Shown here: positions 1,551-59,310 of the stretch, in pieces
How the letters are laid out: every line of letters begins with the position of its first letter
How positions within the stretch are numbered: position 1 is the stretch's first letter
Made by a program: the position numbers and the translations under genes
Notes under the pieces: model-generated
Databases searched by the model: none
What the model saw: the letters and a program-made list of their open reading frames with translations, nothing else
Told to the model about the DNA's origin: nothing
NCBI GenBank assembly: GCA_003693705.1
Contig: RBZT01000771.1
Span: 43,592 to 107,591, forward strand
DNA from: Polymyxa betae A26-41
Taxonomy: Eukaryota > Protista > Endomyxa: Phytomyxea
DNA length: 64,000 nucleotides
Reading direction: 5' to 3'

Positions 1551-2921
1551 ATGGCGAGCTCGCTGTCGACTATCTTTTGGGCCGTCCTCAGTGTCCTGCA
1601 TCTGCCCATTTTTGCAATTCCGGTCCTGTATTGGCGTAGGCGGAACCTCGATCCGATCAATGTGAGACGGCCGCGAATTCTCATCATCCCCTTGGTGACT
1701 CTTGTCATCGCCATCTGGCACATCCTGCTTCGAGCCCTGTTCCACCTATCATCGAAATCCTGGCTGAACATTATTATCCTATCTGTTCTGCTTGTGACAT
1801 CATCCGAATCGTTCTTCGTCTTTGCCTTATCGCTCTATATCGCCTACAACAAGATGAAACTGCAGATCGCTATGTATCAAGAGAGTCAGAAATCCTCGGA
1901 CATGGAAAGCTTGAAAACGTTCCTCGAATCGATCAGAATGATTTCTTGGCTGCTGAGCGAAAAATTCGCATACGCCTGGGTCGTCGGGCACGTTCTGCTA
2001 TGGACCATGATCGTCTTGATCTACATCGGAACCCGGATTGGGTTCCCGAATTGTTTAACTCCGTTGAGTGATATCTCAGAGCAAGCTGCCCATCATGTCT
2101 TAATCATGGTCTATGGACGGAGCTTGTTGACGGTCATTTGCTGGATTGTCTTGTCTTTCAAACTGCGTCTGATGCAAGATGCATTCGGCACCAAATCGTT
2201 GCTGAAAAAGACCGGCCTGATCGGCGCCACTTGTCTTTGTTATCATTTCTTTTTAGAGAAGACGGTGGCTGAAATTTCGGTGCTCCGCTTGCACGACTTA
2301 TGCACTTTAGTGCTCGTTGATGCAGCTTTTATCATTTCATTCATCATTCCGTTATTGCAGACACGCAAGATTGCGAATCGGACACCGTCCACAAGCTATT
2401 CTTCTGGCACCTCGGCAAGGCCGTCGGATTTTGAATTGTTCTTGCACACGGCTGATGGCTTTGCAGCATTCAAACGGCATTTAGAGAAGGAGTTCGCTGT
2501 CGAGAATCTGCTCTTCTGGAAAGATGTGAATTTGTTTCGTGAAAAGTGTGATGCCGACGATGCAGGCCGACTGAGCTGTAAAAGCATTATTCTGTCCTGG
2601 GCAATATTCGACAAGTATCTTTGCAGCTCGGCGCCTCTGGAAATCAACCTACCATTCCAGCTGTCAATGAAGTTCAGGAATATATTCGCGAATCGGATGG
2701 GCGGAAGCCCAGCAATTACAGCGGCGATCTTCGATGAGGCAGCGAATCAAGTCCTTCAGCTTATCGAAGTGGATTCTCTACCAAGGTTCCTGAGGACTAA
2801 CCCACCATCTTGGAATCAGTTCAGGGCTCTATGCGAAGAGAGGATGGTCGCCAATCAGGTCGATGAACTCGGCAAGGCGCGAATATCTCGCGAACGTACA
2901 AGCGACAGTTGCGATTGCTAG
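1551..2921 (+). CDS. 7TM-RGS protein (seven-transmembrane domain + RGS GAP domain), copy 1
   Basis: 456-aa single ORF with ~7 hydrophobic segments and DAFG loop, then an RGS box (FKRHLEKEFAVENLLFW..PLEINLP..FDEAANQVLQLIEVDSLPRFL). Confidence 0.9.
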   Translation: MASSLSTIFWAVLSVLHLPIFAIPVLYWRRRNLDPINVRRPRILIIPLVTLVIAIWHILLRALFHLSSKSWLNIIILSVLLVTSSESFFVFALSLYIAYNKMKLQIAMYQESQKSSDMESLKTFLESIRMISWLLSEKFAYAWVVGHVLLWTMIVLIYIGTRIGFPNCLTPLSDISEQAAHHVLIMVYGRSLLTVICWIVLSFKLRLMQDAFGTKSLLKKTGLIGATCLCYHFFLEKTVAEISVLRLHDLCTLVLVDAAFIISFIIPLLQTRKIANRTPSTSYSSGTSARPSDFELFLHTADGFAAFKRHLEKEFAVENLLFWKDVNLFREKCDADDAGRLSCKSIILSWAIFDKYLCSSAPLEINLPFQLSMKFRNIFANRMGGSPAITAAIFDEAANQVLQLIEVDSLPRFLRTNPPSWNQFRALCEERMVANQVDELGKARISRERTSDSCDC

Positions 2922-44399: not shown

Positions 44400-45797
44400 T
44401 CAGTGCATAGAACGGTAGGTTTCGAATTCGTTAGATTCGTGCCAACTCAGTGGCGCTTTTACCAATTTATCGACTTGATGAGCCACCATGGATTCTTCGT
44501 TCAATGCCAAGAACTGCCTCCATGCTGGTGGGTCGGTGTTCAGGAAGCGTTTTAATGAATCCACTTCCATTAGGAATAGAATCTGTTTCGCTGATTTATC
44601 GAAAATCGACGCTGTAATGGCGGAATTGTCGCCAGAACGATCGACAAAAATCTCCTCTCTGAATTTGATCAAATGCTCGCTTGGTAAGTTTACTTCCAGA
44701 GGCGCCGATTTTGAGAGATACTTGTCAAATATCTTCCATTCTAGATTGATGCTGTGATCACTTCGATAGCCCGATGGAAATGAATCGCAACATTCCCGAA
44801 ATAAAGTCACATCTTTCCAGAAGAGCAGATTCTCCAGAGAGAACTCTTTCTCTAAATGCGATTTGAACGCCTCGAACCCTTCCTCTGTCAGGAGAAATGA
44901 CTCGAAATTCGACCTCGTCGGATTGCAATCTTGAACTTCGCAACCAATAACAGCTCGAAGACGGGTGTCTCCTCGCGCCCGATATAAAGGGACGATGAAG
45001 GCAATAGCAAAAGCTGTATCTGCAAGTAATATCGTGATTACATCATTTAGGGCTAGATTTGATAATGCTAATATTCTTTGATCCAGAACTATTAGATAGA
45101 TTACACTGACAATAGCTATGAAGCCACATTTTTTCAGCAACGCCTTCGTCCCAAATGCATCTTGGACTAAACGCAATCGCCACGATAAAACAAACAGCCA
45201 GAAAGCGGTGAACAGGCATCGGCAGAAGATGAACATCGCGGCCTGATCTCCAGCACTTAATGCGTTTTCGTCCAATTGGCTCCAAGAAGTCATCAAATTA
45301 GCAAAGCCAACCTGGTACCACAAATAACTCAGGACGACTGTTGTCCATAACAAGGTATTTCCAATAATCCAGGTGTAGGCGAACTGTTCGCTTAACAGAA
45401 AAGAAGACAGATGGATGGATCTGATGGTCTTGTTAATCCTTTCAGTATCCGTTGAATCGCGAACCGCTTGGTACAGATTCAGTTGTTCCTTGGTCTTATT
45501 ATATGCAATGTATAAGGTTAAAGCGAAGACGAAGAACGCCTCGCATACATAACTCAAGAAAAAACATATAATTATAAGGTCAAGAGCGCAATAGGAAGGA
45601 ACTCCGAGTAGATTACGAATCAAAATGTACCATATGCTTGTATAAAGGGACAGAAGCGCTGCGATAAAGATTCGCGGGCGTCTCACCTTGATTGGATCCT
45701 GGTGTCTTTTCCGCCAATAAAGCCAAGGAACAGGAAGAATGGGTAAATGAAGCACATTGATGACCGCCCAGAAGACAGTCCGTGACAAATTAACCAT
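44400..45797 (-). CDS. 7TM-RGS protein, copy 2
   Basis: 465-aa ORF colinear with copy 1; EFSLENLLFW, PLEVNLP, MEVDSLKRFL. A terminal intron after VDKL is possible. Confidence 0.9.
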   Translation of the reverse strand: MVNLSRTVFWAVINVLHLPILPVPWLYWRKRHQDPIKVRRPRIFIAALLSLYTSIWYILIRNLLGVPSYCALDLIIICFFLSYVCEAFFVFALTLYIAYNKTKEQLNLYQAVRDSTDTERINKTIRSIHLSSFLLSEQFAYTWIIGNTLLWTTVVLSYLWYQVGFANLMTSWSQLDENALSAGDQAAMFIFCRCLFTAFWLFVLSWRLRLVQDAFGTKALLKKCGFIAIVSVIYLIVLDQRILALSNLALNDVITILLADTAFAIAFIVPLYRARGDTRLRAVIGCEVQDCNPTRSNFESFLLTEEGFEAFKSHLEKEFSLENLLFWKDVTLFRECCDSFPSGYRSDHSINLEWKIFDKYLSKSAPLEVNLPSEHLIKFREEIFVDRSGDNSAITASIFDKSAKQILFLMEVDSLKRFLNTDPPAWRQFLALNEESMVAHQVDKLVKAPLSWHESNEFETYRSMH

Positions 45798-46514
45798 GGC
45801 TGGACATCAAGCAGCAAGGCCAAAATCGCAGCGTGGATTGTCGATCATAGATATTCTGAAAGGTTCAGTCCCTGATTGCAGGTACCGTCTATCCTGATTT
45901 CCAGCTTGTATCAGCCCTCAACGTTCTATCAAAGGAGCAATAATTAGCTATGTACTAGTACAGAGCTCACCATAATTGCAGCCTAATACCGTATTGAGTT
46001 CTCCGTTCGCCTTTTCAATCACCGTATAGGAAGCGATCGTATGACGAATCCGATCCATCCAAGGACGGATACCGAACACGTTTTAGTCGAATGAGCTGGC
46101 ATCGGTCAATGCCTGGCTGCAACAAGTCCTTCCAGCGGCATTGACCTTGATGGCCAGCGTCCATACATTAACGGAAGCGAATCTAGCAATTTTGGCCTTT
46201 CAAAATGCTCAAGTGCTAACAATACAGTCTTATTGTTTTAATCATTGAGCCTCTATTTGGCCCTGATTGTAGTTGGTTCAATTATAGGAGCCGTTGGACC
46301 TGGAGCCAGCTTTTGGTGATACGGTCTCCTCCTAAGGACGTTGCAAACCTCTAGGCAAGATAACGCTTGATGTTGGTGCCAGCGACAAAAAGCAGGTTCG
46401 GGTTGTGCAGACGGATCGGCAGGGTGCTGCTCGAGGTACTCGTCGTGCTACCTCTTTCGGCGCTTTCCAGATCGGTCGATGATATTCGCTCAGATCTGTG
46501 GTACTGTTGGTATA

Positions 46515-47907
46515 TTATGGTTTACGATCGATGTTTGGAAGGACAGGTTTCGAGTTCAGAAAATTCACCAATCTATCGACGTGATTCGCGACCATCGTCT
46601 CTTCGTGCATGGCCAGAAACTGCCTCCATGTTGGTGGATCCGTTTTCAGGAATCTCTTCAGTGAGTTGATTTCCATTAACAACAGAATTTGATTCACGGA
46701 TTCATCAAAGATCGTTGCTGTAATGGTCGAGTTGTCGCCGGAACGATTCACGAAGATCTCGTTCCTGAATATGATCAACTGCTCGCTTGGTAAGTTTACT
46801 TCCAGAGGCGCCGATTTTGAGAGATATTTATCGAAGATCTTCCATGCTAGATCGATACTTGGAATACCTCGATTGCCTGCTGAATTCAAATCGCAACACT
46901 CCCGAAATATTGTCACATCTTTCCAGAACAGCAAATTCTCCACAGAGAACTCTCTCTCTAGATGCGACTTGAACGCCTCAAACCCGTCTTCTGTCAAAAG
47001 AAATGACTCGAAACTTGATCGTCTCAGCTTGCAATCATGAACTTCCCAACCGATTACAGTTCGGAGACGGGCGCTGGCGCTCCTTCGCGCCCGAAATGCG
47101 GGAATGGCGAATGCCATAGTAAAAGCTGTGTCCATAAGTGATAGCGTAAACACATCGTTTAGGCGAAGATCTGACAATCCCAGGATCATCTTGTCCAGAA
47201 ATAACAGAAAGCAGAGACAAGCAACGCCAATGCAGCCACATTTCTTCAGCAACGCTTTCGTCCCGAATGCATCCTGGACCAAACGCAATCTCCATGAAAC
47301 AAAAGCCAGGCCCAATACGGTAACAAGGCCACGGCTGAAGATCAGCATCGCCAGCTGCTCAACAGTTCTTGCTGTGTTTTCATCCATCTGATTCAATGGA
47401 GTCAACCACAGAGAAAACTCAATCGTGATCCCGATGTAAAGCGCGACGATTATCGTCCATAACAACGTATGCCCAATAATCCAGGTGTAGGCGAATCTTT
47501 CGCTTAATAGGACAGTACAACCTGATGGATCTGATATTTTTCTCAATGCTGTCAGTATCATCTGATTTGCGAATGGCCTGGTACAGAACCATTTGTTCTT
47601 TGGTCTTATCATACGCGATATACAGAGCGAGAGCAAAGATGAACCACGCCTCACATACAGAAATCATCAAAGGACATAGTATTAGAATGTCGAGCAAACA
47701 GTAAGAGGACATTCCGAATAGATTACGAAGCAGAATGTGCAGAAAGTTCGCAAGCAGGGTCAAAAGCGCTGGCATGAAGATTCGCGGGCGTCTCACCTTG
47801 ATCGGACCATGGTTTCTCTTCTGCCAATAAACCCATGGAACAGAAAGCAGCGGTAGATGAAGCATACCGATGATCGCCCAGAAGATGGTCAACGACAAAT
47901 CGGTCAT
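46515..47907 (-). pseudogene. 7TM-RGS copy 3 with a 2-nt frameshift at ~47514 (pseudogene or sequence error)
   Basis: ORF 47907-47419 gives the N-terminus and ORF 47654-46515 the rest; junction AGG TTG TAC T GTC CTA TTA AGC versus copy 2 CAT CTG TCT TCT TTT CTG TTA AGC. Confidence 0.8.
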
Positions 47908-48151
47908 GGCTGGCCCCTAAAGCACAGCGGCGCATGCAATGCTGTAGGGAAGATATTCTTATAATCACAGGGTACCCTCTACCGACGTTCACCTCCCCAT
48001 AAGCCCAAGCCCATACAGCTGCATAAGCAGACCGTATATATGCAAGTGCTTTTGATGGACAGGTTGATGCCAATACCGTGATTCGGTCCAGAATTTGTTG
48101 CCATCAATCAACTCGACGCTTCGAAAGAGTAGAATATGAAGGCAGTACGAG

Positions 48152-48197
48152 CGTGACGAATCCTCAACAACCATAGTTGGTGGCGGGATTCGTCACG
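48152..48197. other. Perfect 12-bp-stem hairpin between AGO and 7TM-RGS copy 3
   Basis: CGTGACGAATCC ... GGATTCGTCACG, with an inner CAAC-cata-GTTG mini-stem. Confidence 0.7.
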
Positions 48198-48548
48198 ACG
48201 AGCACTAGCTATCAATGCCCAAGTACATCATGATCGCACAGAATATTGTTGACGACCGATTTGGAGCTCGTATTGTAAGGTTCACTTCCTAATTACTACA
48301 GAGTTACAAATACAATATCAGCAGCAACTTTGTCTACCTATCAGGTAACTAGTCGATAGAGTTGCACTACTCTTCTACGGCGTAGAAACGCAAGAAAGCT
48401 CGAATAAATGCAAATGCTGTTAATGCTTAACTGACAAGAGCAAATGTGACGTCAATAAAGTGATATTGTCAAGGACCCTGTCATTAGAATGTACAGCATA
48501 TCGAACCTCGAGGAAGTAAACCTGTGATAGTTCGGTAGAATCAAGATT

Positions 48549-51053
48549 TCAGATGAAGTACATCTGGGAAGCAGTACGGGCCCTAACAGTGGGAATGGCA
48601 CCGAAAGTAGGCGACGCTTCAGAGATAGAGCCAGACATGGCTTCTAATTCATCAGCCTTGGAATGATAGCGGGCACGGAAAGCAGCGAGATGAGCATAGT
48701 AAGCGGCCGGTACAAGTGAAACCGAACGGGTACAGCGGGCGTACAAGTAGCACATTCGGTTGGTGAGATCTTGCAGGAAGTCGGCGGTGAAGTTATTCTC
48801 GTCGAATATACAATGATAGTGAGTTGGTCGCGAAGTTCCCTGAATTCCACCATGAGCTACCAGGTAGAAATCGAATTGACGGGGATGAACGACGTTAGTA
48901 TCGACCACAGTGCCAGCCGGGACGTTACCAGAGCGATCAGCTTCACGAGAAGAAGCGCCGTTGACAAAAAATCGAGCATGATGACGCTTTTGAACAATGA
49001 CGAAGGTGATCTTTGGCGAGTAATTGGCCTCCAGTTCACTGCAAGCGGTTCGAAGGGCGTTCAATTCGTGTTTGAGGACATATTCGAACTGGCCTTCCGA
49101 AACACCATCTCGATAGAACAGAATTCGTTCAGGTTTCTTGCCCTTGGTAGATATGTGAAAGCGTTTCAACAGGTTCATGGCCATGGACTTCAAGTCTTCA
49201 ATAATTTCTTGACGACTTCTTTGAACCCGGGTCTCGACCTCATAACGGAATGGAAAAGCATCCATTGAAGCCACCACAGCCGCAAGAGATGGCAATTTCG
49301 AAAATGGCGCAGCGTGTGATACATCGGCACCAAAAACAATGGCAGGTTTGGAGAACAGGAAATCGGACGATGGAGACGGGCTCAGAATATTGTTAACGCC
49401 ACCAGTACGAGCGTTAATTTTGAGAAGCAGGTTACGGGCGTACATCGGATTGGCTCTCTGCATATTCTTCGACTGCATACATTGAGATGGAACATCAAGA
49501 ACGGTGTCACAGACGCGTTTGATTTCTCCATAAGCCGATGGATCACCAAATGGTAAGATGATCAGCAGAAGCTGAGGCTGGCCCTTCGTTGTCTGTTGAA
49601 CTTGCTGGATAGCACGCATGATAATCTCGCGATAATCAGGTGCAGAGCGACGTTGAGGGCGATGAGGAATCAGGACGGGTCGCTGGAAGGCGACACCATG
49701 CTCTTTGCCGGCACCATTCAAAACCTTAAGAAAATTCATAACCTCTTGCTCACGAGCACGGGTTTCTATAACCAAACAGCCCCAATGGTTGATTGGGTTC
49801 GAGACATACATCTGGGCATCGCGTGGCTGCAAGACGCCCACGTTCGGCTTAACAGCCTTGTTACGAGAGGTCGGCTTGTAAGTGATGGTTGGAGGTTCGA
49901 GAACACGGCCATCGATATGCAGAAGCTGCTGGTTGACGCGAATGCCGAAGTCCTTCAAAGCAGGATCGCGATCGTAGAATCGCTCGTTGATAGCGTTCTG
50001 GACGTGCTGCAGACGGACCGTTAGATTCGTAGCTGTTTTCTTGATCATGGAGGCGGTTTGAGCCGGAGCCAGTTTGTTGATACGTTCTCCTCCTAGGACA
50101 TTGCAGACCTCTATAGGAAGGTATGTTGGTTTCTGCTTAGAGCCAACCACCAATAAGGGCAGGTTCGGATACCGCAGGCGGACCTGATAACGCTCTAGAA
50201 AGTATTCGGCAACATTAGTTCGGCGAGCACCGTCGTCAACATCAAAATGGGCTTGGAGAGCGTTCTCTTTGGCGATATCGCGAATGATGTAGCGGCGCTT
50301 GAATTCATTACGGTGGGTGACGAAGACCTTGACACCAACCAATTCAGCACGTAAGGCACCACGATTGACATCGAGGATCTGGCCCAGGGGATTCTTCGTC
50401 ACACTGGCAACCAATTCCATGACAGGCTGCGGCTTGCGAAAACAGGAAGCGGCAATATCGAGGTTCACCAACAGGCGACCATGCGCAGGACGAAGCGATT
50501 GATGGTAGCCGAACCAGATTTCAGCTCCAGCATCAAGAGGAACAGTGTTCTTGCCGGAGAAAAAGGATGACCCAATAGTGGTGCAGGTGGCAATCGGTGT
50601 CGTACGAAGGACGACGTCCAAGGCTTGGATCGCATCCTGTGGAATGTCGATATCTTGACCGTCCAAGAAGGCAAGGAGTGTGGACATGCTGACAACGGCA
50701 ACATGCTCGATTTTGACAGTGAACTTATCACGACGATCGGGAAGCTCAACAATCTCGACACGGCTGCTCCATGACATACGCTTAGGATAGTAAAGCGACG
50801 CTTCACCGTCATAAGCTGGGGTCAGGTTGCCTTCGAATAGATCGTGACTGCTGCTGCGAAGGTGGACTATAATCATACGATTGATGGGTTTTGGAACGTT
50901 CGGCGTGATCTGAACATTATACATGTGCAGGTCGGCAGACGGGACGACTGGGATTTCGAAAAAGTTCGTGACAAGTTGGATGCGACGGCCGCGAGTGCCT
51001 GCACCAGGGCGTTTTGGCATGAAGGCAGGGTTAGATATCACGAGTTCAGTCAT
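48549..51053 (-). CDS. AGO: Argonaute (AGO clade), intron-free, catalytic tetrad present
   Basis: 834 aa. N: KRPGAGTRG..LVTNFF. PAZ: YFLERY..LRYPNLP..YLPIEVC. MID: YGEIKR..SQCM. PIWI: FGADVSH, QEII, YRDGVSEGQF, QGTSRPTHY, AYYAHLAAFRAR, ending MYFI. Confidence 0.97.
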   Translation of the reverse strand: MTELVISNPAFMPKRPGAGTRGRRIQLVTNFFEIPVVPSADLHMYNVQITPNVPKPINRMIIVHLRSSSHDLFEGNLTPAYDGEASLYYPKRMSWSSRVEIVELPDRRDKFTVKIEHVAVVSMSTLLAFLDGQDIDIPQDAIQALDVVLRTTPIATCTTIGSSFFSGKNTVPLDAGAEIWFGYHQSLRPAHGRLLVNLDIAASCFRKPQPVMELVASVTKNPLGQILDVNRGALRAELVGVKVFVTHRNEFKRRYIIRDIAKENALQAHFDVDDGARRTNVAEYFLERYQVRLRYPNLPLLVVGSKQKPTYLPIEVCNVLGGERINKLAPAQTASMIKKTATNLTVRLQHVQNAINERFYDRDPALKDFGIRVNQQLLHIDGRVLEPPTITYKPTSRNKAVKPNVGVLQPRDAQMYVSNPINHWGCLVIETRAREQEVMNFLKVLNGAGKEHGVAFQRPVLIPHRPQRRSAPDYREIIMRAIQQVQQTTKGQPQLLLIILPFGDPSAYGEIKRVCDTVLDVPSQCMQSKNMQRANPMYARNLLLKINARTGGVNNILSPSPSSDFLFSKPAIVFGADVSHAAPFSKLPSLAAVVASMDAFPFRYEVETRVQRSRQEIIEDLKSMAMNLLKRFHISTKGKKPERILFYRDGVSEGQFEYVLKHELNALRTACSELEANYSPKITFVIVQKRHHARFFVNGASSREADRSGNVPAGTVVDTNVVHPRQFDFYLVAHGGIQGTSRPTHYHCIFDENNFTADFLQDLTNRMCYLYARCTRSVSLVPAAYYAHLAAFRARYHSKADELEAMSGSISEASPTFGAIPTVRARTASQMYFI

Positions 51054-51771
51054 GATTGAAGACGGATAAATAGATTAGAGAGCTGCACACTTCGACCAGC
51101 TCATGTACAGACACAAAAGGCAATGAGGGCTACTTAAGAGATAAAGTTGACTCCGGCCCGATCTTATTGGTGCATTTCTTCCCACTTGTATGAAGCTGAA
51201 ATTAGTTTCTGTGGAAACCAAATCGGCCGAGTCTTTCCACAAAATTCATGCATCTTGAATAAGCGTTTGATTGGTATCAAATCAAACATAATGATGTCTA
51301 AACTATGTAATCGTTATACCGTCCTCTTCTTAGATCAGGTTAGTCTAGACGACATGTTGTTGGATGAAAGGTCGTGATACTTCTTCGAGATCAGTCAAGT
51401 TCTGGTAGCTGACAGGCTCGAGACGCGACATTGTTCGCATTGACCAGGGCGTCCTAATTTCTGGGACGATGTAGGCTTTGACTGATGAGACGACTCGTGA
51501 CCATCATGATTCATGAAGAGACGAAAACCACTTTAAGGCTTTGAACCTGAAACACTCCTGAGGCCGCGCCCACCTTGCCAGTTACATCAATCTCAGTGCG
51601 ATTCGTGACATGATACAATTTTGAGCGAGAGTCCTTCATTGAGTGCCAAACTCTAGGCCCTGCTCTTCCCATTAACCAATGAAATGAATCCATAGAGCAT
51701 GGCAGACGGATCCACAGCCTCTCAGCCGCGACCAGCAACACCCAATAGCGACTTTGCTCATGATAATTGGT

Positions 51772-53193
51772 TTATTTAGATGCTGTAGAGGTAAGCTGAT
51801 GTATTGAGATATGGACGTCATCTTGCGCTTCTGAATCCGGTCGTTTTGTCCTAATTTTCGCGAACGTATCGACATTGTGCACAACCCTTTTCTCTTCACA
51901 TAACGCCTTGAAATGCTGCCACGATGGGTGATTCGTCCGAAGAAACCGCCCTAACGAATTGGTTTCCATCAACAGTAATATTTGAGCTGCGGACTCGTCG
52001 AACATGGTAGCCGTGATCATTGTATTCTCGCCTGACCGGTCCTTGAAGATGTCCCGGAAATGCTTCGATAGCTCGCTTGGTAGGTTGACTTCCAGAGGTG
52101 ACGAACTGGAAAGATACTTGTCAAAGATCTTCCAGGCCAGGCCGACGATTTCAGTGTTTGGACTGGCTCCGTCAGCAGTCCCGCATCCGGCGCGAAATGA
52201 GGTCACGTCTTTCCAGAATAGGAGATTCTCGACAGAGAACTCCCTCTCTAAATGTGCTTTGAATGCCTCAAATCCCTCCTCTGTAAGAAGGAATTCCTCA
52301 AAATCCGATTTCTGCCCGTTTCCACCTGCGTCGTTGCCTTCAATCACAGTTTGCAGACGGGCTCGCTTTCGTGTCTGGAACAGCGGCATGACAAAAGCAA
52401 TTATAAAGGCGCTATCAATAAGCAAGAGAGTGCAAAAGTCTTGCAGATTCAAGGTTGACAAGGCAGCGATTCGTTTTTCCAGCAACATATTGCAGCATAA
52501 GGTGATGATGCCGATTAAACCGATCTTTTTCAGCAACTTCTTGGTGCCGAAAGCATCTTGGACTAATCGTAATCGCCAGGACAGAACGAACAGCCAGAAA
52601 ACCGTGATCAGGCCTCGTCCATAGATAAGAACGAGCGCCATCTGTCCTGCTTGTGCTGTGTTCTCATCGATTTCGCTGAGAGGTGTCAAGACATCTGTGA
52701 CACTGATTTGGCTGTAGAAATAAAGAATGACGACTGGTGGCCAGATCACAGTCTGGACAATCACCCAGGTATAGGCGAACTTCTCACTCAATAGGAACGA
52801 GAACATTTGCATCGATCTGATGAACTTATTGGCGCTTTCGACATCTGTCGAATTTTGGATCGCTTGATAGATCATCATTTGCTCTTTGGTCTTGTTGTAT
52901 GCGATATATAACGATAGAGCAAAAACAAAGAACGACTCGCATACTGGATTGATGAGGGCGCTTGAAATTACAATGTCCAAATATGAGCTTGCCGATAATC
53001 CAAACAGATTTCGAAGCAATACGTGCCAAATATTGACCCATAGAGCTATCAATGGAATCATGAAGATTCTTGGCCTTCTCACATTGATGGGATCGCGATC
53101 CCTGTTCTGCCAATACAGGAATGGGACAGCAAGCAAAGGCAGATGAAGCACGTTTGCAACAGCCCAAATAGCAATCGCGGACGAATTTGCCAT
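51772..53193 (-). CDS. 7TM-RGS protein, copy 4
   Basis: 473-aa single ORF colinear with the other copies; EFSVENLLFW, PLEVNLP, METNSLGRFL. Confidence 0.9.
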   Translation of the reverse strand: MANSSAIAIWAVANVLHLPLLAVPFLYWQNRDRDPINVRRPRIFMIPLIALWVNIWHVLLRNLFGLSASSYLDIVISSALINPVCESFFVFALSLYIAYNKTKEQMMIYQAIQNSTDVESANKFIRSMQMFSFLLSEKFAYTWVIVQTVIWPPVVILYFYSQISVTDVLTPLSEIDENTAQAGQMALVLIYGRGLITVFWLFVLSWRLRLVQDAFGTKKLLKKIGLIGIITLCCNMLLEKRIAALSTLNLQDFCTLLLIDSAFIIAFVMPLFQTRKRARLQTVIEGNDAGGNGQKSDFEEFLLTEEGFEAFKAHLEREFSVENLLFWKDVTSFRAGCGTADGASPNTEIVGLAWKIFDKYLSSSSPLEVNLPSELSKHFRDIFKDRSGENTMITATMFDESAAQILLLMETNSLGRFLRTNHPSWQHFKALCEEKRVVHNVDTFAKIRTKRPDSEAQDDVHISIHQLTSTASK

Positions 53194-53907: not shown

Positions 53908-56900
53908 ATGAAGGTCGTCGTTGCTGCCGCCCTCCTGCTCTTCTTTGCGCTAAATGCGTCTGCTTCGGTCATTGGGGTCGATTTCGGATCGCAGTATATC
54001 AAAGCGGTGGCGATCAAGCCGGGAATGCCGTTTTTCACGGTTTTAGATGAAGCATCTAAGCGAAAATCACTGTCACTTGTATGAGCTCTATCACCGTGTT
54101 GTGTCGTGCTTAACATGTCGTAGGTGTCGTTTGATACAAACCAGAGACTACTTGGAAACGCGGGCGAAGCTTTGGCGGTGAAATTCCCCAATGCTGCGTT
54201 CATGTGGACACATCGACTTCTTGGGAAGCCATTTGGATGTCAAATCCAACAGGAACTACTCGACGCTGGTTATCCCTATACATTCTCCCCGACCCCAAGA
54301 GGCACAATTGGTAATCTTATTCCTCAACCAGTCTGCCATCGCTTAAATTTTGTCAAGCTATGGACGTCGACGGTTCGAAATATTCGGTCGAAGAGTTGGT
54401 TGCGATGCAATTGCGCATGATCCGACATAATGCTTTCGTTCAAAGCGGTGTCCCCATTAATCAAGTTGTCATCACTGTCCCGCCGTATTTCAGGTAGAGT
54501 AAACTGCTCTGGCATTGTCATTTTACTTATTTCTGTCAGTCAAACGGAACGTCAGGCTGTTTATGACGCGGCGGCAATTGCTGACTTAAAAGTTCTTTCA
54601 TTGATTAACGACAATAGCGCTGCTGCCATTGAATACGGCCGTGAGCGTACCTACAGCTTAAATGAGACACACACAGCTTGCATCTTTAACGTTGGCGCTT
54701 CATCGACAACAGCAACTGTTGTCAAGTATTCTGCGTATCCCATAAAGAATGGTTTGTGCTTTCGGCTTCTGGTTTTCGTTTTTGTTTTTGACAAGTTATA
54801 GGATTAGTCAACGTTCCCTCTGGCCAGATGGAGGTCATTGGCAATGGCTTTGATGACAGACTTGGTGGCAACCCGTTTGACATTCGTCTGGCATTATATC
54901 TTGCCGACCAGTTCCAGGTATTATCGTGTTGGCTTCGCCTATGAAGATTTACATTTCGCAGGAACAAGTGAACAAAGCTGGATTCAATGTTGATGTCCGA
55001 ACTTTACCTCGCGTGATGGCACGTCTTCGCGGTGCTGCTCAAAAAGCCAAAGAAGTATTGAGTGCCAACCAAGAGTGCATAGTAATGCTCCCATTAGAGC
55101 TTATGGTTTGAGTTCTAAACCGCTTTAGGTTCGTGTTGAAAGTCTTTACGAAGAATTGGACTTCAAACATCTTCTCAACCGTGATATTTTCCACGACATC
55201 TCCAAAGATCTGTTTGATCGGTTTACCCCGGTTATCATGCGTGCTTTGGATGATGCCAAGGTTTCTGCTGAAGACGTCAATGCTTTCGTTCTTGTTGGTG
55301 GCGGCTCTCGTATCCCTCGTATTCAGGTAATGGTTCTTGATTAACGTCATTCACACTTCTGAAAGCGGTTCTTTAGGAAATTTTAAAGAATTCTACCGGC
55401 GGCAATGAATTAGACCAAAGCTTGAACGCCGATGAGGCGATTTCGTTCGGCGCTGCCCTTTACGCTGCTAATAACAGTGTGTCATTCCGAGTTCGTAAGT
55501 TTGGATATATCGATCGGCTCCAATATCCCGTTGGGGTTCGGCTTGTGGAGTTATCGGGCAAGGATGGAAATGAGCCACGATCAAAACGTGCTAGCGTGTA
55601 CTCCAAGTAAATATTTAACTGCTGCTTTTTATGCATTTTCTGATGTAAGTCAAGGCATGCTCGCGTTGATTCTCAGCGACATATCGAAGTTCCTTGGGAA
55701 TCTGATGTTCGTGTTGAGCTTCATTATGATGAAAAGAAGTTACCCTCTTGTATCGATCAGAAAATCTCTCAGTATGAGGTCACCGGAATCTCAGAGGCCT
55801 GCTCTGAATACAAGGTTCTATATCAGCATATTGATAGATCGATTTTTTACAGTCTTCTCAGAAACATGGAACTCCGTCTGTTCAGCTCACGTTTGATTTA
55901 AAGCCTGATGGGATGGTGCAGTTGGTGTCTGGTGAAGTATCAGTTACTTACACTGAAATGGAGCCAGTCCCTCCGAAGAAGTCCAAGGCAAAGGTTGACT
56001 CGATTTACTTCTCGCAATCGCCATTGATGTTTCTGTCTTTTAGAAGGATGATGAATCTTCAGAGCAAGATTCAGAACCCGAGATGCGCCCTGTAAGCAAG
56101 ACGCTGCAGACCCCTGTAAATATCATAAAGAAATCGTTTGGGAACATTCACTTCCTCGATGACGACGGCCTGAAGGCTTCTAAAGCCGCCATCGACGCTC
56201 TCGATAAACGTGACCAACACGTCAAGGTAAACTTTCACCATGCCTTCCAGGCTTCAATCGAACTCTGCTGACAGGATCTTGCTGCTGCTCGTAATCGTCT
56301 TGAAGCGCACATATATGAAACCCGTTCAAAGATGGACGATGACCTTGTCAAGAAGTATTCCACTCCAAAGCAGCAGGAACAGATTTCGGAAAGTTTAGAT
56401 TCTGCTGAACTGTGGCTGGAGGATAATTTCGAATCGGATCAAGTTTCGTTGTTTACGGACAAGTTGGCCGAGCTGAAGGCTTTGTCGGATGATATCTTCT
56501 TCCGTATCAAAGAGGCAGGGCTTCGTACAGATTCCTTGGCGGATCTCGACGCTGCTGTTGCCAGTACGTGTTAATCCTGGTTAACTATCTCATAATGCTA
56601 ATTTGAAACAGGTGCATCTAAATCGTTGAAGAAAATCCGGGAAAAAATGGATTGGGTTCCACAGGAAATGATCCAGTCTCACGAGAAGTTGCTGACTGAA
56701 ACTATGGAGTGGCTGGCAAGCAAGACTGCCGAACACAATTCCATGGTTTGATGATTCTGTTAATGTTAGATGAGAGCTGATACTGTTTCTATAGGATCCT
56801 GTCGAGAATCCCAAATTTTTAGCAAGTGACGTAGATAAGCAGAAAAAACAGCTTGTTGACCGTACTGCTCTACTTCAGCGCTACCCCAAACCGCCTCCCA

Positions 56901-57184
56901 AACCGGCTGACACTAAGAAAAAGAACGCCACTGAACCAGGCAAAGCTAAGAGCTCCGGCAATTCGGAATCTTCTGCTGAGCCGTCAACGGATTCATCGAA
57001 GGAAGCCTCTAACGAGTCGTTTAATGAACCATCTGTAGAGTCATCTAATGAATCATCAACTGAATCTTCAAACGAGGATCCAGCAAAATCTGGAGAAGTT
57101 CCAGAGAGTACACCTGAAGAAAGCGGCGAGTCCGAGCCCCAAGATGTTGAGAACTCCCACGATACAGGAAAAGACGAACTGTGA
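53908..57184 (+). CDS. HYOU1: ER Hsp70-family nucleotide-exchange factor HYOU1/GRP170/Lhs1 (multi-exon)
   Basis: Signal peptide + VIGVDFGSQYIK, LVGGGSRIPRIQ, LNADEAISFGA, ARNRLEAHIY, acidic tail and C-terminal KDEL. Confidence 0.92.
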
Positions 57185-57545
57185 ATGCGAATGCATGTCG
57201 TTACCGATTGCAATCAATAAATTGTACCTATCTTTGGATGGATTCTGGGTGTTGATAAAAAACTTATAAATTTTGAGCAAACGATTGGATCACGAGTTGA
57301 TTCTTCATTCAATGGTATGCTTGCTTCCTTATGTGCTGTCTCTGAAGCTTTTGTATCTGGAATCCGCCGATGAGAGTTTCCCAAAGAACCAAGGTTAGGG
57401 TTAGGGTTTGTTATCGGCCATAAGGGGGCTGCTCCAATTCTACTGATGAAATGTTGGCAGGGTGCACCGACCATACTTAGCGAGCGCTTCGGTTCTTACG
57501 TACACCCGTACATTCATATTAACGATCCTAGTTCAAAATCCGTTT

Positions 57546-59310
57546 ATGACCAACGAGTTTGCATGCCCGGTCACTGTCGGTTTTCCAAAACCCGGTTCTT
57601 CGCTTCAATGTGACTGCAAAGTCAGCTCGGAATCGATCAGTTTCTCAGCTGCTCAAGCAAAACCCATACCACTAACAACCAGTTTATATCTCGATGAGTT
57701 CGGTCAAACGAATGGATTCGCTATTTGGAACGATGATGGGATTCAGGCTGTGATATCAAGCAATCCAGATAATCAACTGAATCTGGTGTGTGGTTTTGAG
57801 GGAAGTTGAACTGGTCTTTGATTTGCCCTATTCAGATGAATGCAATCATCGATCATCTCTGGGAACCTATCGGTCGTGTGAGTTCAGAACCCATCGACCA
57901 AATGGAATGGCGTCATTCGGTATTCTGGCTTCTTAACCTCGCATCGAGTTCTCATACCATTTAGGTTCACAGAGGAAGTTTACATTCTGCTTGTGTTCTT
58001 GGAGACAAGGAACGTTTTGAAAAGCTTATCTCAGAAATGGCGTCCTTCTCAGTCGATCGGCAGTAAGTCAAGCGAAAACAGTTTACGACTGCTTTCAAAG
58101 TTGATTTTGAAGGGACTCTTCCGGGCGTACAGCACTTTATTATGCTTGCAGCCGCGACTTCAAACATGGCGTTGAATCACTTGTGAAAGCAGGTGCTGAT
58201 CCAGCATATGGCGATAATGAAGGCGTTACGCCACTACACGTCTCGTCACGATTGGGGCATGCCAACACGACTCAATTCCTTTTGACATCAGGAACCGGTG
58301 TCATCGTTGCTGAATTCGAAGGTGATCAGACCTCTCCAGTCTGGTTGGCCGCTTGCAGTAACAACCCTCGAGCTGCTGCATGCTTGAAAGCTTTGTTAGC
58401 GCATGGGTTTTCTGCCGATCTTACATACGAAGGCAAACATTTGCTACATGTCGCTTGTATTCAGAACCAAACGGAGGTGGTTGAAACTCTTCTCGTAGAA
58501 GGGAAACTCGACCCTAATATCATTTCTAGCGAGGGACTCGGTCCTTTACATTATGCTGTTCGTGAGAACGCCACGAATGAGCCCACGTTGGTGAAAGATC
58601 TGCTATGGGCGGGAGCCTATGCTAACTATCCCACTGACGACGACCTCAAGAATACCCCTCTTCATTTATGCAGGCAAGAAGACGTCGCGATGGCGTTGGT
58701 TCAGCATGGCGCCCGACTAGACATATTGAACGCATCTGGACAAGCAGCGACCTATCATCTATCAGAAGACTTCGTCAAACGTCTTTCATCGACCAGTTTA
58801 GTTAGATGGAAGCTAAAACGAGAAGTCGCGATTCTGTTCTGCCCGAACGCTGCCTATCTGGATGGGTCGACATGCCGCCTATGCAAGTACGCTTTCTTGC
58901 CACTCATTGGCAGAAAGCATCATTGTCGGATCTGTGGCAGTTTAGTCTGCGAATCGTGCTCACTGAAACGCGTCACGTTCTCAAGCCAGGCTTATCGTGC
59001 ATGCGATGGTTGCTTCAACCGTGCCATCGAGGCCAAGGTCGCATTCCAAATGCTCCCGAACGCGATTCCTGCTGTGCCTGATAGTCCCCCGGGTGAGCTA
59101 TTAGACTCCCCTGAGCTGTCACCGACGTCCCGGCCAGCCGCCTTGGACCTCTCTGATAATGAGACGGCTATAGCTCGACCCATAGCCGCCCTTCAAGAAA
59201 GGAGCCAGGCTCTGGATGAGCTGGGCAACAGATCGGATGCCCTTCGCAACGATGCCGAACAGTTCGCCAGTCTGGCCGACAAGCTGGCAGCGAAATTCGG
59301 TGCCAAATGA
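57546..59310 (+). CDS. Ankyrin-repeat + FYVE zinc finger + C-terminal R-SNARE-like motif protein
   Basis: Ankyrin: GVTPLHV, GPLHYAV, TPLHL. FYVE: CRLC..RKHHCRICG..CESC..RACDGC. Tail: LQERSQALDELGNRSDALRNDAEQFASLADKL. Confidence 0.85.

Follow-up and report, generated by a model that had tools for sequence, protein, structure and literature searches.

The Argonaute (AGO) gene considered here lies in a 64,000-nucleotide stretch of the draft genome of Polymyxa betae A26-41, the rhizomania virus vector (contig RBZT01000771.1, positions 43,592 to 107,591 of the forward strand; the whole stretch is called the window). The gene stands among genes for seven-transmembrane (7TM) proteins that carry an RGS box, and the analysis concerns its origin and its place among them. 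The array is read from the (−) strand and consists of RGS_A (44400–45797, 465 aa, intact), RGS_B (46515–47907, broken), AGO (48549–51053, 834 aa, a single intact exon) and RGS_C (51772–53193, 473 aa, intact), with a decayed piece of AGO (46157–46485) between RGS_B and RGS_A. A preliminary description of this DNA had set AGO in a same-strand array of 7TM-RGS genes, between copies 3 and 4 and with copy 2 next to them. The position of AGO between same-strand RGS genes stands, but the fourth 7TM-RGS paralog of the window (1551–2921, 456 aa, found as an open reading frame (ORF), by jackhmmer and in the tree, with its RGS match at C355:46024–46389) is on the (+) strand, opposite to the array and ∼42 kb from it, so that the array proper is three RGS genes plus AGO. 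A fifth paralog lies on the same contig just beyond the window.

The claim of an uninterrupted 2.5 kb AGO reading frame with a D-E-D-H tetrad was borne out. The AGO protein scored above the Pfam cut-offs for ArgoN, ArgoL1, PAZ, ArgoL2 and Piwi, while ArgoMid reached 17.6 bits, under its cut-off of 27.5. Residues 10–811 were aligned with residues 22–830 of human AGO2 (E = 5e-194, ∼40% identity), and the domain order N-L1-PAZ-L2-MID-PIWI runs along the entire protein (MID below the Pfam cut-off). The motifs GADVSH, RQEII, YRDGVSEGQF and AYYAHL share alignment columns with GADVTH, QEII, RDG and YAH of human AGO2, the tetrad residues of which we take to be D597, E637, D669 and H807. In the 5′-phosphate pocket, whose residues presumably have the roles assigned to them in human AGO2, a tyrosine, a lysine and a glutamine are retained and one lysine is replaced by arginine. 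The window protein thus aligns with human AGO2 (PDB entry 4OLA and others) over its full length and has the DEDH columns and most pocket residues in common with it, but it is without the N-terminal extension and its MID domain is less readily recognized. Judged by its sequence, it belongs to the eukaryotic AGO clade and should be slicer-competent, and it most likely acts as an ordinary small-RNA effector.

The RGS boxes of the neighbouring genes (residues 298–422) gave Pfam matches of 1e-13 to 1e-16 (1.5e-13 for RGS_A, 1.6e-16 for RGS_C). Hydrophobic segments, assigned by the Kyte–Doolittle method, number six to seven in RGS_A, in which the fourth transmembrane segment is weaker, and seven in RGS_C. 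The RGS_C box matched RGS16 with E = 1e-9 and retains the FSxEN (as FSVEN) and EVN motifs, whose part in contacting Gα we assume from RGS4. AtRGS1-type receptor-like GTPase-activating proteins (GAPs) have seven N-terminal helices and a C-terminal RGS box with both motifs, as here, and were reportedly found in plants and protists by Bradford and co-workers in 2013. By architecture the window genes, with a predicted 7TM part N-terminal to the RGS box, are of this type; the likeness is one of architecture, and in P. betae the family is large (∼30 genes). Matches to Gα were obtained on a dozen contigs, some of them exon pieces of one gene (best E = 3.5e-119), and these G proteins are the most likely substrates of the three RGS genes, whose products would serve as receptor-like GAPs, as far as sequence can tell.

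Across the P. betae genome 37 RGS matches and ∼29 family ORFs were found, often in tandem pairs. Outside the genome, a word search with the RGS_C protein returned a single distant match. The Atlas cluster that holds RGS_C has 483 members, mostly from Endomyxa, and the Atlas model has a TM-score of 0.87 to its own cluster. Outside that Endomyxa cluster its nearest structural neighbour is a 7tm_3/RGS cluster from Zoopagomycota, with a TM-score of 0.74. Radiations of RGS genes and 7TM-RGS architectures are known in rhizarians and other protists (PMC3971589; de Mendoza et al., 2014).

In the tree the four RGS genes that contig C355 has within the window fall into one clade, with RGS_A and RGS_B as sisters. 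The synonymous divergence (dS) between these two is 0.75, and that of either of them from RGS_C exceeds 2. In RGS_B a 2-nt deletion at 47516/47517, placed by alignment with RGS_A and RGS_C, leaves two overlapping ORFs instead of one; the gene is otherwise open, with 464 codons free of stops. At the break the contigs of runs X3, X7 and X8, which come from three studies, agree with the window without any difference, and since three independent runs reproduce the deletion it is no assembly slip. For the comparison of rates RGS_B was read through with NN/X at the break, and the two sisters were found to have practically the same number of unique changes (40 and 41). A single lesion together with a number of changes like that of its sister indicates that RGS_B broke recently.

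The space between RGS_B and RGS_A contains a remnant of AGO sequence. This relic (46157–46485, (−) strand, detected by blastn and tblastn) corresponds to about codons 271–382, from the end of PAZ to L2, is interrupted by stops and frameshifts, and begins ∼30 nt past the RGS_B stop, ahead of the RGS_A start, in the same orientation as the intact gene. Its identity by blastn is 71% across 142 bp with 50044–50182 in the window AGO (E = 1e-15) and 70.5% across 220 bp with C776b, the AGO at C776:44152–46667 (E = 6e-17). The tblastn alignment reveals the motif EVCNVLGGERITKKLAPAQTA, and the relic retains an ancestral codon, since lost from the window AGO (the T of ERITKKL). No similar AGO fragment was found at 20 other RGS loci or in the remainder of the window, which makes the relic unique among 22 RGS loci. 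A genome-wide protein search for AGO fragments returned the four full genes only; it also misses the relic of the window and is therefore insensitive to relics.

The four Piwi-bearing genes of the P. betae genome are single ORFs of 832–838 aa, and both AGOs of Plasmodiophora brassicae are single-exon genes. Most of the 7TM-RGS paralogs are likewise long single ORFs, whereas the genes around the array are broken into ORF pieces of 70–200 aa, i.e. are intron-rich. The intron-free state to which the preliminary description had drawn attention is therefore real and sets the array apart from its neighbours, but it is not distinctive of these genes, their families being largely alike. The missing introns are a property of the AGO and RGS families, which for the AGOs predates the Polymyxa–Plasmodiophora split.

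The origin of the window AGO was traced in a tree of 20 AGO sequences. It clusters with C776b and with P0002, an orthologue from a JGI metagenome, with 100/100 support, on a branch of 0.14 as compared with 0.012 and 0.019 for the C776b/P0002 pair, and so falls with C776b as a lineage-specific duplicate. The AGO pair of P. brassicae and that of the P0003/P0006 organism are separate lineage-specific duplications. The closest named relatives of the window AGO are the two AGOs of P. brassicae, with 73 and 70% identity. Compared as DNA, the window AGO is 80.7% identical to C776b over 2609 bp, from the stop codon to ∼91 nt 5′ of the ATG; the homology breaks off within ∼10 nt past the stop and, abruptly, ∼95 nt ahead of the start, and the final 30 nt of the two coding sequences are 100% identical.

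The surroundings of the two copies indicate the direction of the move. Contig C776 carries two convergent AGOs flanked by an Arm-repeat gene and, at the opposite end, by an exportin gene, both of which are also found at the AGO locus of P. brassicae, where the tandem AGO pair lies amid an Arm-repeat gene, a DEAH helicase, an SMC gene and an exportin. Beyond AGO itself, the window and the P. brassicae AGO locus were found to have nothing in common. Because C776 has flanks in common with P. brassicae and the window has none, the C776 locus is ancestral and the window copy derived; the window AGO is a dispersed, lineage-specific duplicate of C776b. As a side observation, the AGO pair is convergent in P. 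betae and tandem in P. brassicae. A second concerns the clade that includes the C351 and C776a AGOs, which has no P. brassicae member among the matches; of two old plasmodiophorid AGO lineages, one may have disappeared from P. brassicae.

Between the window AGO and C776b dS is 0.99 and dN/dS (nonsynonymous to synonymous divergence) 0.08, rising to 0.24 in codons 201–300. The dS to the JGI orthologue is ∼1.55 for either copy, which places the duplication after that split. In a Tajima test with P. brassicae as the outgroup 64 unique amino-acid changes were assigned to the window AGO and 17 to C776b, so that the window protein is changing about four times faster than its parent. The parent lineage is under very strong constraint (omega = 0.017), and relative to it the window AGO is several-fold relaxed or accelerated, yet remains under purifying selection. 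The fast change, which peaks in the PAZ region, suggests a sub- or neo-functionalised fourth AGO.

The copy brought part of its upstream sequence with it. A 5′ leader of ∼91–95 nt containing an upstream ATG (51054–51144, (−) strand) is conserved with the leader of C776b (L012:6669–6759, where L012 is C776:40000–49999). Over the last 100 alignment columns 53 of the 70 compared positions are identical, and overall identity is ∼76–80%, whereas the coding sequences differ at 55% of synonymous sites (pS = 0.55). Since the leader is better conserved than synonymous sites and the upstream ATG is kept in both copies, the leader is probably functional, to judge from this comparison.

Whether the copy was made through RNA or DNA bears on another suggestion in the preliminary description, that of an AGO retrocopy in a tandem array. 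That a dispersed duplicate landed inside the RGS array is essentially right, but no hallmark of retroposition was found. A processed retrocopy, in which C776b mRNA would have been reverse-transcribed and inserted into the RGS array, accords with the location of the copy on a different contig and with a homology to the parent limited to the coding sequence and the ∼91 nt leader, the end of which may mark a transcription start. However, at dS ∼1 the neutral flanks of a DNA duplication would be equally beyond recognition. Neither an A-rich tract nor 3′ untranslated region (UTR) homology to the parent was found 3′ of the AGO stop, direct repeats or a target-site duplication around the copy were searched for and none was found, and no marks of a transposon or of retroposition came to light; at this age, poly(A) remnants and target-site duplications may have been erased. 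The loss of introns is uninformative since the parent and all relatives are intronless, and for the same reason a retrocopy and a DNA-level duplicate are indistinguishable. A retrocopy is rated as unlikely, although it deserves consideration. The spacers were further compared with each other and with the array flanks by sensitive blastn, which returned the AGO relic only, and an upstream region duplicated within the array, as had been suggested, was not reproduced at the DNA level. The AGO–RGS_B spacer also contains a 12-bp perfect inverted repeat (48152–48197, CGTGACGAATCC ... GGATTCGTCACG).

Three genes of the array are transcribed. Transcript-like contigs of all three runs cover AGO, RGS_B and RGS_C. 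The X3 contig (4931 nt) runs unbroken from RGS_B through AGO to the RGS_C stop and skips 48288–48336, with 255 letters on the shorter side of the joint 48287>48337; shifted by one, the segment removed is a 49-nt GT..AG intron on the (−) strand (48289–48337) in the AGO–RGS_B spacer, and its having been spliced out shows the contig to be of RNA origin. Together with the ends of the X7 and X8 contigs at the spacers, the spliced joint shows AGO, RGS_C and, despite its break, RGS_B to be transcribed. The bridge between AGO and RGS_B in X3 may reflect overlapping UTRs or read-through, and the intron may belong to the AGO 3′ UTR, to the RGS_B 5′ UTR or to a read-through RNA.

These contigs count among the evidence for a co-regulated module, in which AGO and the flanking RGS genes would be expressed from one chromatin domain or by read-through, and a dedicated AGO would be produced along with particular sensing receptors, perhaps in zoospores or at host entry. 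Spacers of ∼640–720 bp separate these same-strand genes, X3 is continuous with the spacer intron spliced, the three genes have contig depths of similar magnitude in the three runs, and the copy has been held under selection at this site since dS ∼1. However, a contig over two genes is not a single transcript, and those of X7 and X8 end in both intergenic spacers; short spacers and overlapping UTRs are the norm for the compact P. betae genome, and contig depth measures expression poorly. The neighbour most closely joined to AGO is the broken RGS_B, and the linkage is missing at the other AGO loci described below. A module of this kind was considered improbable.

A different link between the genes would be that transcripts of RGS_B and the relic feed small RNAs to AGO, which would tune the ∼30 RGS genes or the AGO paralogs. 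A transcribed pseudogene does adjoin AGO, an AGO relic lies within the array and the genome keeps an RNA-dependent RNA polymerase (RdRP). There is also one weak antisense joint within RGS_B, a 59-nt X8 contig (46788>46850) that leaves out 61 nt bounded by GT..AG on the (+) strand, antisense to the region of the RGS box. This single contig has only 29 letters on one side of the joint, falls in sequence common to the paralogs and may be an assembly artefact, and the single lesion and RGS_A-like rate of RGS_B are those of a recently broken gene, not of a dedicated source of small RNAs. Such policing of the receptor family by AGO is very improbable.

The linkage was then sought elsewhere. In ∼25 kb of P. 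brassicae sequence, which extends 10 kb or more past either end of the AGO pair, neither Pfam nor tblastn detected an RGS gene, and the contigs of the other three P. betae AGOs (C351 and C776) have no RGS match. The association of AGO with RGS genes is therefore missing in P. brassicae and at the other three P. betae AGOs. The AGO copy arose only after the nearest sampled relative had split off, which makes deep conservation of the linkage impossible. The literature search found no paper linking AGO and 7TM-RGS genes.

Nor does the array have the appearance of an island. Its flanks are ordinary intron-rich housekeeping genes, and a compositional island was ruled out, the G+C content being 0.44–0.48 against a mean of 45.1% for the draft genome (PMC6328671). 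The preliminary description had proposed an accessory island coupling sensing to a small-RNA pathway; with P. brassicae and the paralogous loci without RGS, a young copy and ordinary flanks, this proposal gained no support, and functional coupling between AGO and the RGS genes remains unsupported. The same description had noted that 7TM-RGS genes might be numerous enough for adjacency to be expected by chance. The family is indeed large and often tandem, but landing inside such an array is still unlikely, at a rough estimate of a few tenths of a percent of the genome.

The array is best explained by a sequence of four steps. An old RGS pair, consisting of RGS_C and the ancestor of RGS_A and RGS_B, would have been present first (dS >2). 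A duplicate of C776b, either DNA- or RNA-mediated, would then have been inserted between the two diverged RGS genes at dS ∼1 and retained as a working gene that is transcribed, subject to purifying selection and, to judge by its sequence, slicer-competent. In a third step (dS 0.75) a tandem duplication would have given rise to RGS_B and RGS_A, one breakpoint falling in AGO near codon 270 and the other at the 3′ terminus of the RGS gene downstream, and a truncated stretch of AGO would have stayed behind between the two copies. Finally, this piece would have been partly deleted and have decayed, and the 2-nt deletion would have struck RGS_B last. The order of events is inferred from dS values that are near saturation.

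On this basis the adjacency of AGO and the RGS genes probably reflects the landing site of a duplicate in a duplication-prone array and not a functional module. Capture of this kind is supported by the relic between RGS_B and RGS_A, the ladder of dS values, the large tandem family and the repeated duplication of AGO. This reading takes the gene anatomy, the paralogy, the synteny of the parent locus, the rates, the relic and the transcription as established, and infers from there in what order the events took place, where the breakpoints lay and that coupling is lacking.

Several points weigh against this explanation. By a rough estimate, DNA no more than 1 kb away from an RGS gene makes up only ∼0.2% of the genome, so that a random landing there is improbable; these low odds are tempered by the RGS family having been named post hoc and by tandem arrays being prone to duplication. 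The adjacency has persisted since dS ∼1. The breakpoint model requires an extra deletion of ∼1.6 kb, one Polymyxa species was sampled, so that the empty site is not on view, and the X3 contig, which joins AGO to RGS_B through a spliced (−) intron, makes shared or read-through transcription possible.

In its strongest form the opposing view holds that the fourth AGO is a neo-functionalised effector tied to the flanking receptors by read-through or a shared promoter domain, with the spacer intron as a trace, or, in a variant, with RGS_B and the relic as sources of small RNAs that tune the receptor family of ∼30 members. If this were true, a virus-vectoring root parasite would possess a small-RNA arm linked to sensing, something missing from P. 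brassicae. It is held to be decidedly improbable.

The capture favoured here follows the general pattern of dispersed duplicates caught in tandem arrays, in which a gene is copied from a conserved locus and then partially re-copied, leaving a relic. It is unlike the usual captured duplicates in that the captured gene is an RNA interference (RNAi) effector that has long been intact and selected.

The array stands between GATase/NOP2 genes and an HSP70-like gene. Outside it, this HSP70-like gene is followed by an Ank-FYVE gene with a synaptobrevin-like tail (54124–59310, (+) strand). The two genes succeed each other likewise on a 9.3-kb Logan contig (ERR10755939) from a related organism, in which there is a hint that the 4.2 kb upstream of the two genes are without a long ORF. 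The orthologue of the HSP70-like/Ank-FYVE stretch in Spongospora subterranea is 53% identical.

The AGO repertoire may be set beside that of P. brassicae, in which a tandem pair of AGOs, with neither Dicer nor RdRP, was described in the first, recent account of RNAi in Rhizaria, and in which the AGO orthologues mediate silencing (PMC13547706). PbAGO1 and PbAGO2 belong to the same AGO-clade family as the window AGO, to which they are 70–73% identical, and are likewise single-exon genes (838–840 aa) that keep the catalytic residues and arose by a lineage-specific duplication. They differ in being two in number and in standing in tandem at the conserved locus, whereas P. betae has four AGOs, the youngest of which has been relocated to the RGS array of another contig. 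An RdRP-family gene was also found in P. betae (C885:53623–55347, PF05183 E = 1e-150, open frame of ∼1003 aa). With four AGOs and an RdRP against two AGOs and no RdRP, the RNAi toolkit differs within the plasmodiophorids. A specialised role may naturally be proposed for the window AGO, the youngest and fastest-changing of the four. A connection of RNAi with G-protein sensing would be of interest if true, but the evidence favours a historical accident, and the relic and the dS ladder provide a clean, datable case of a tandem receptor array capturing and re-copying an unrelated gene.

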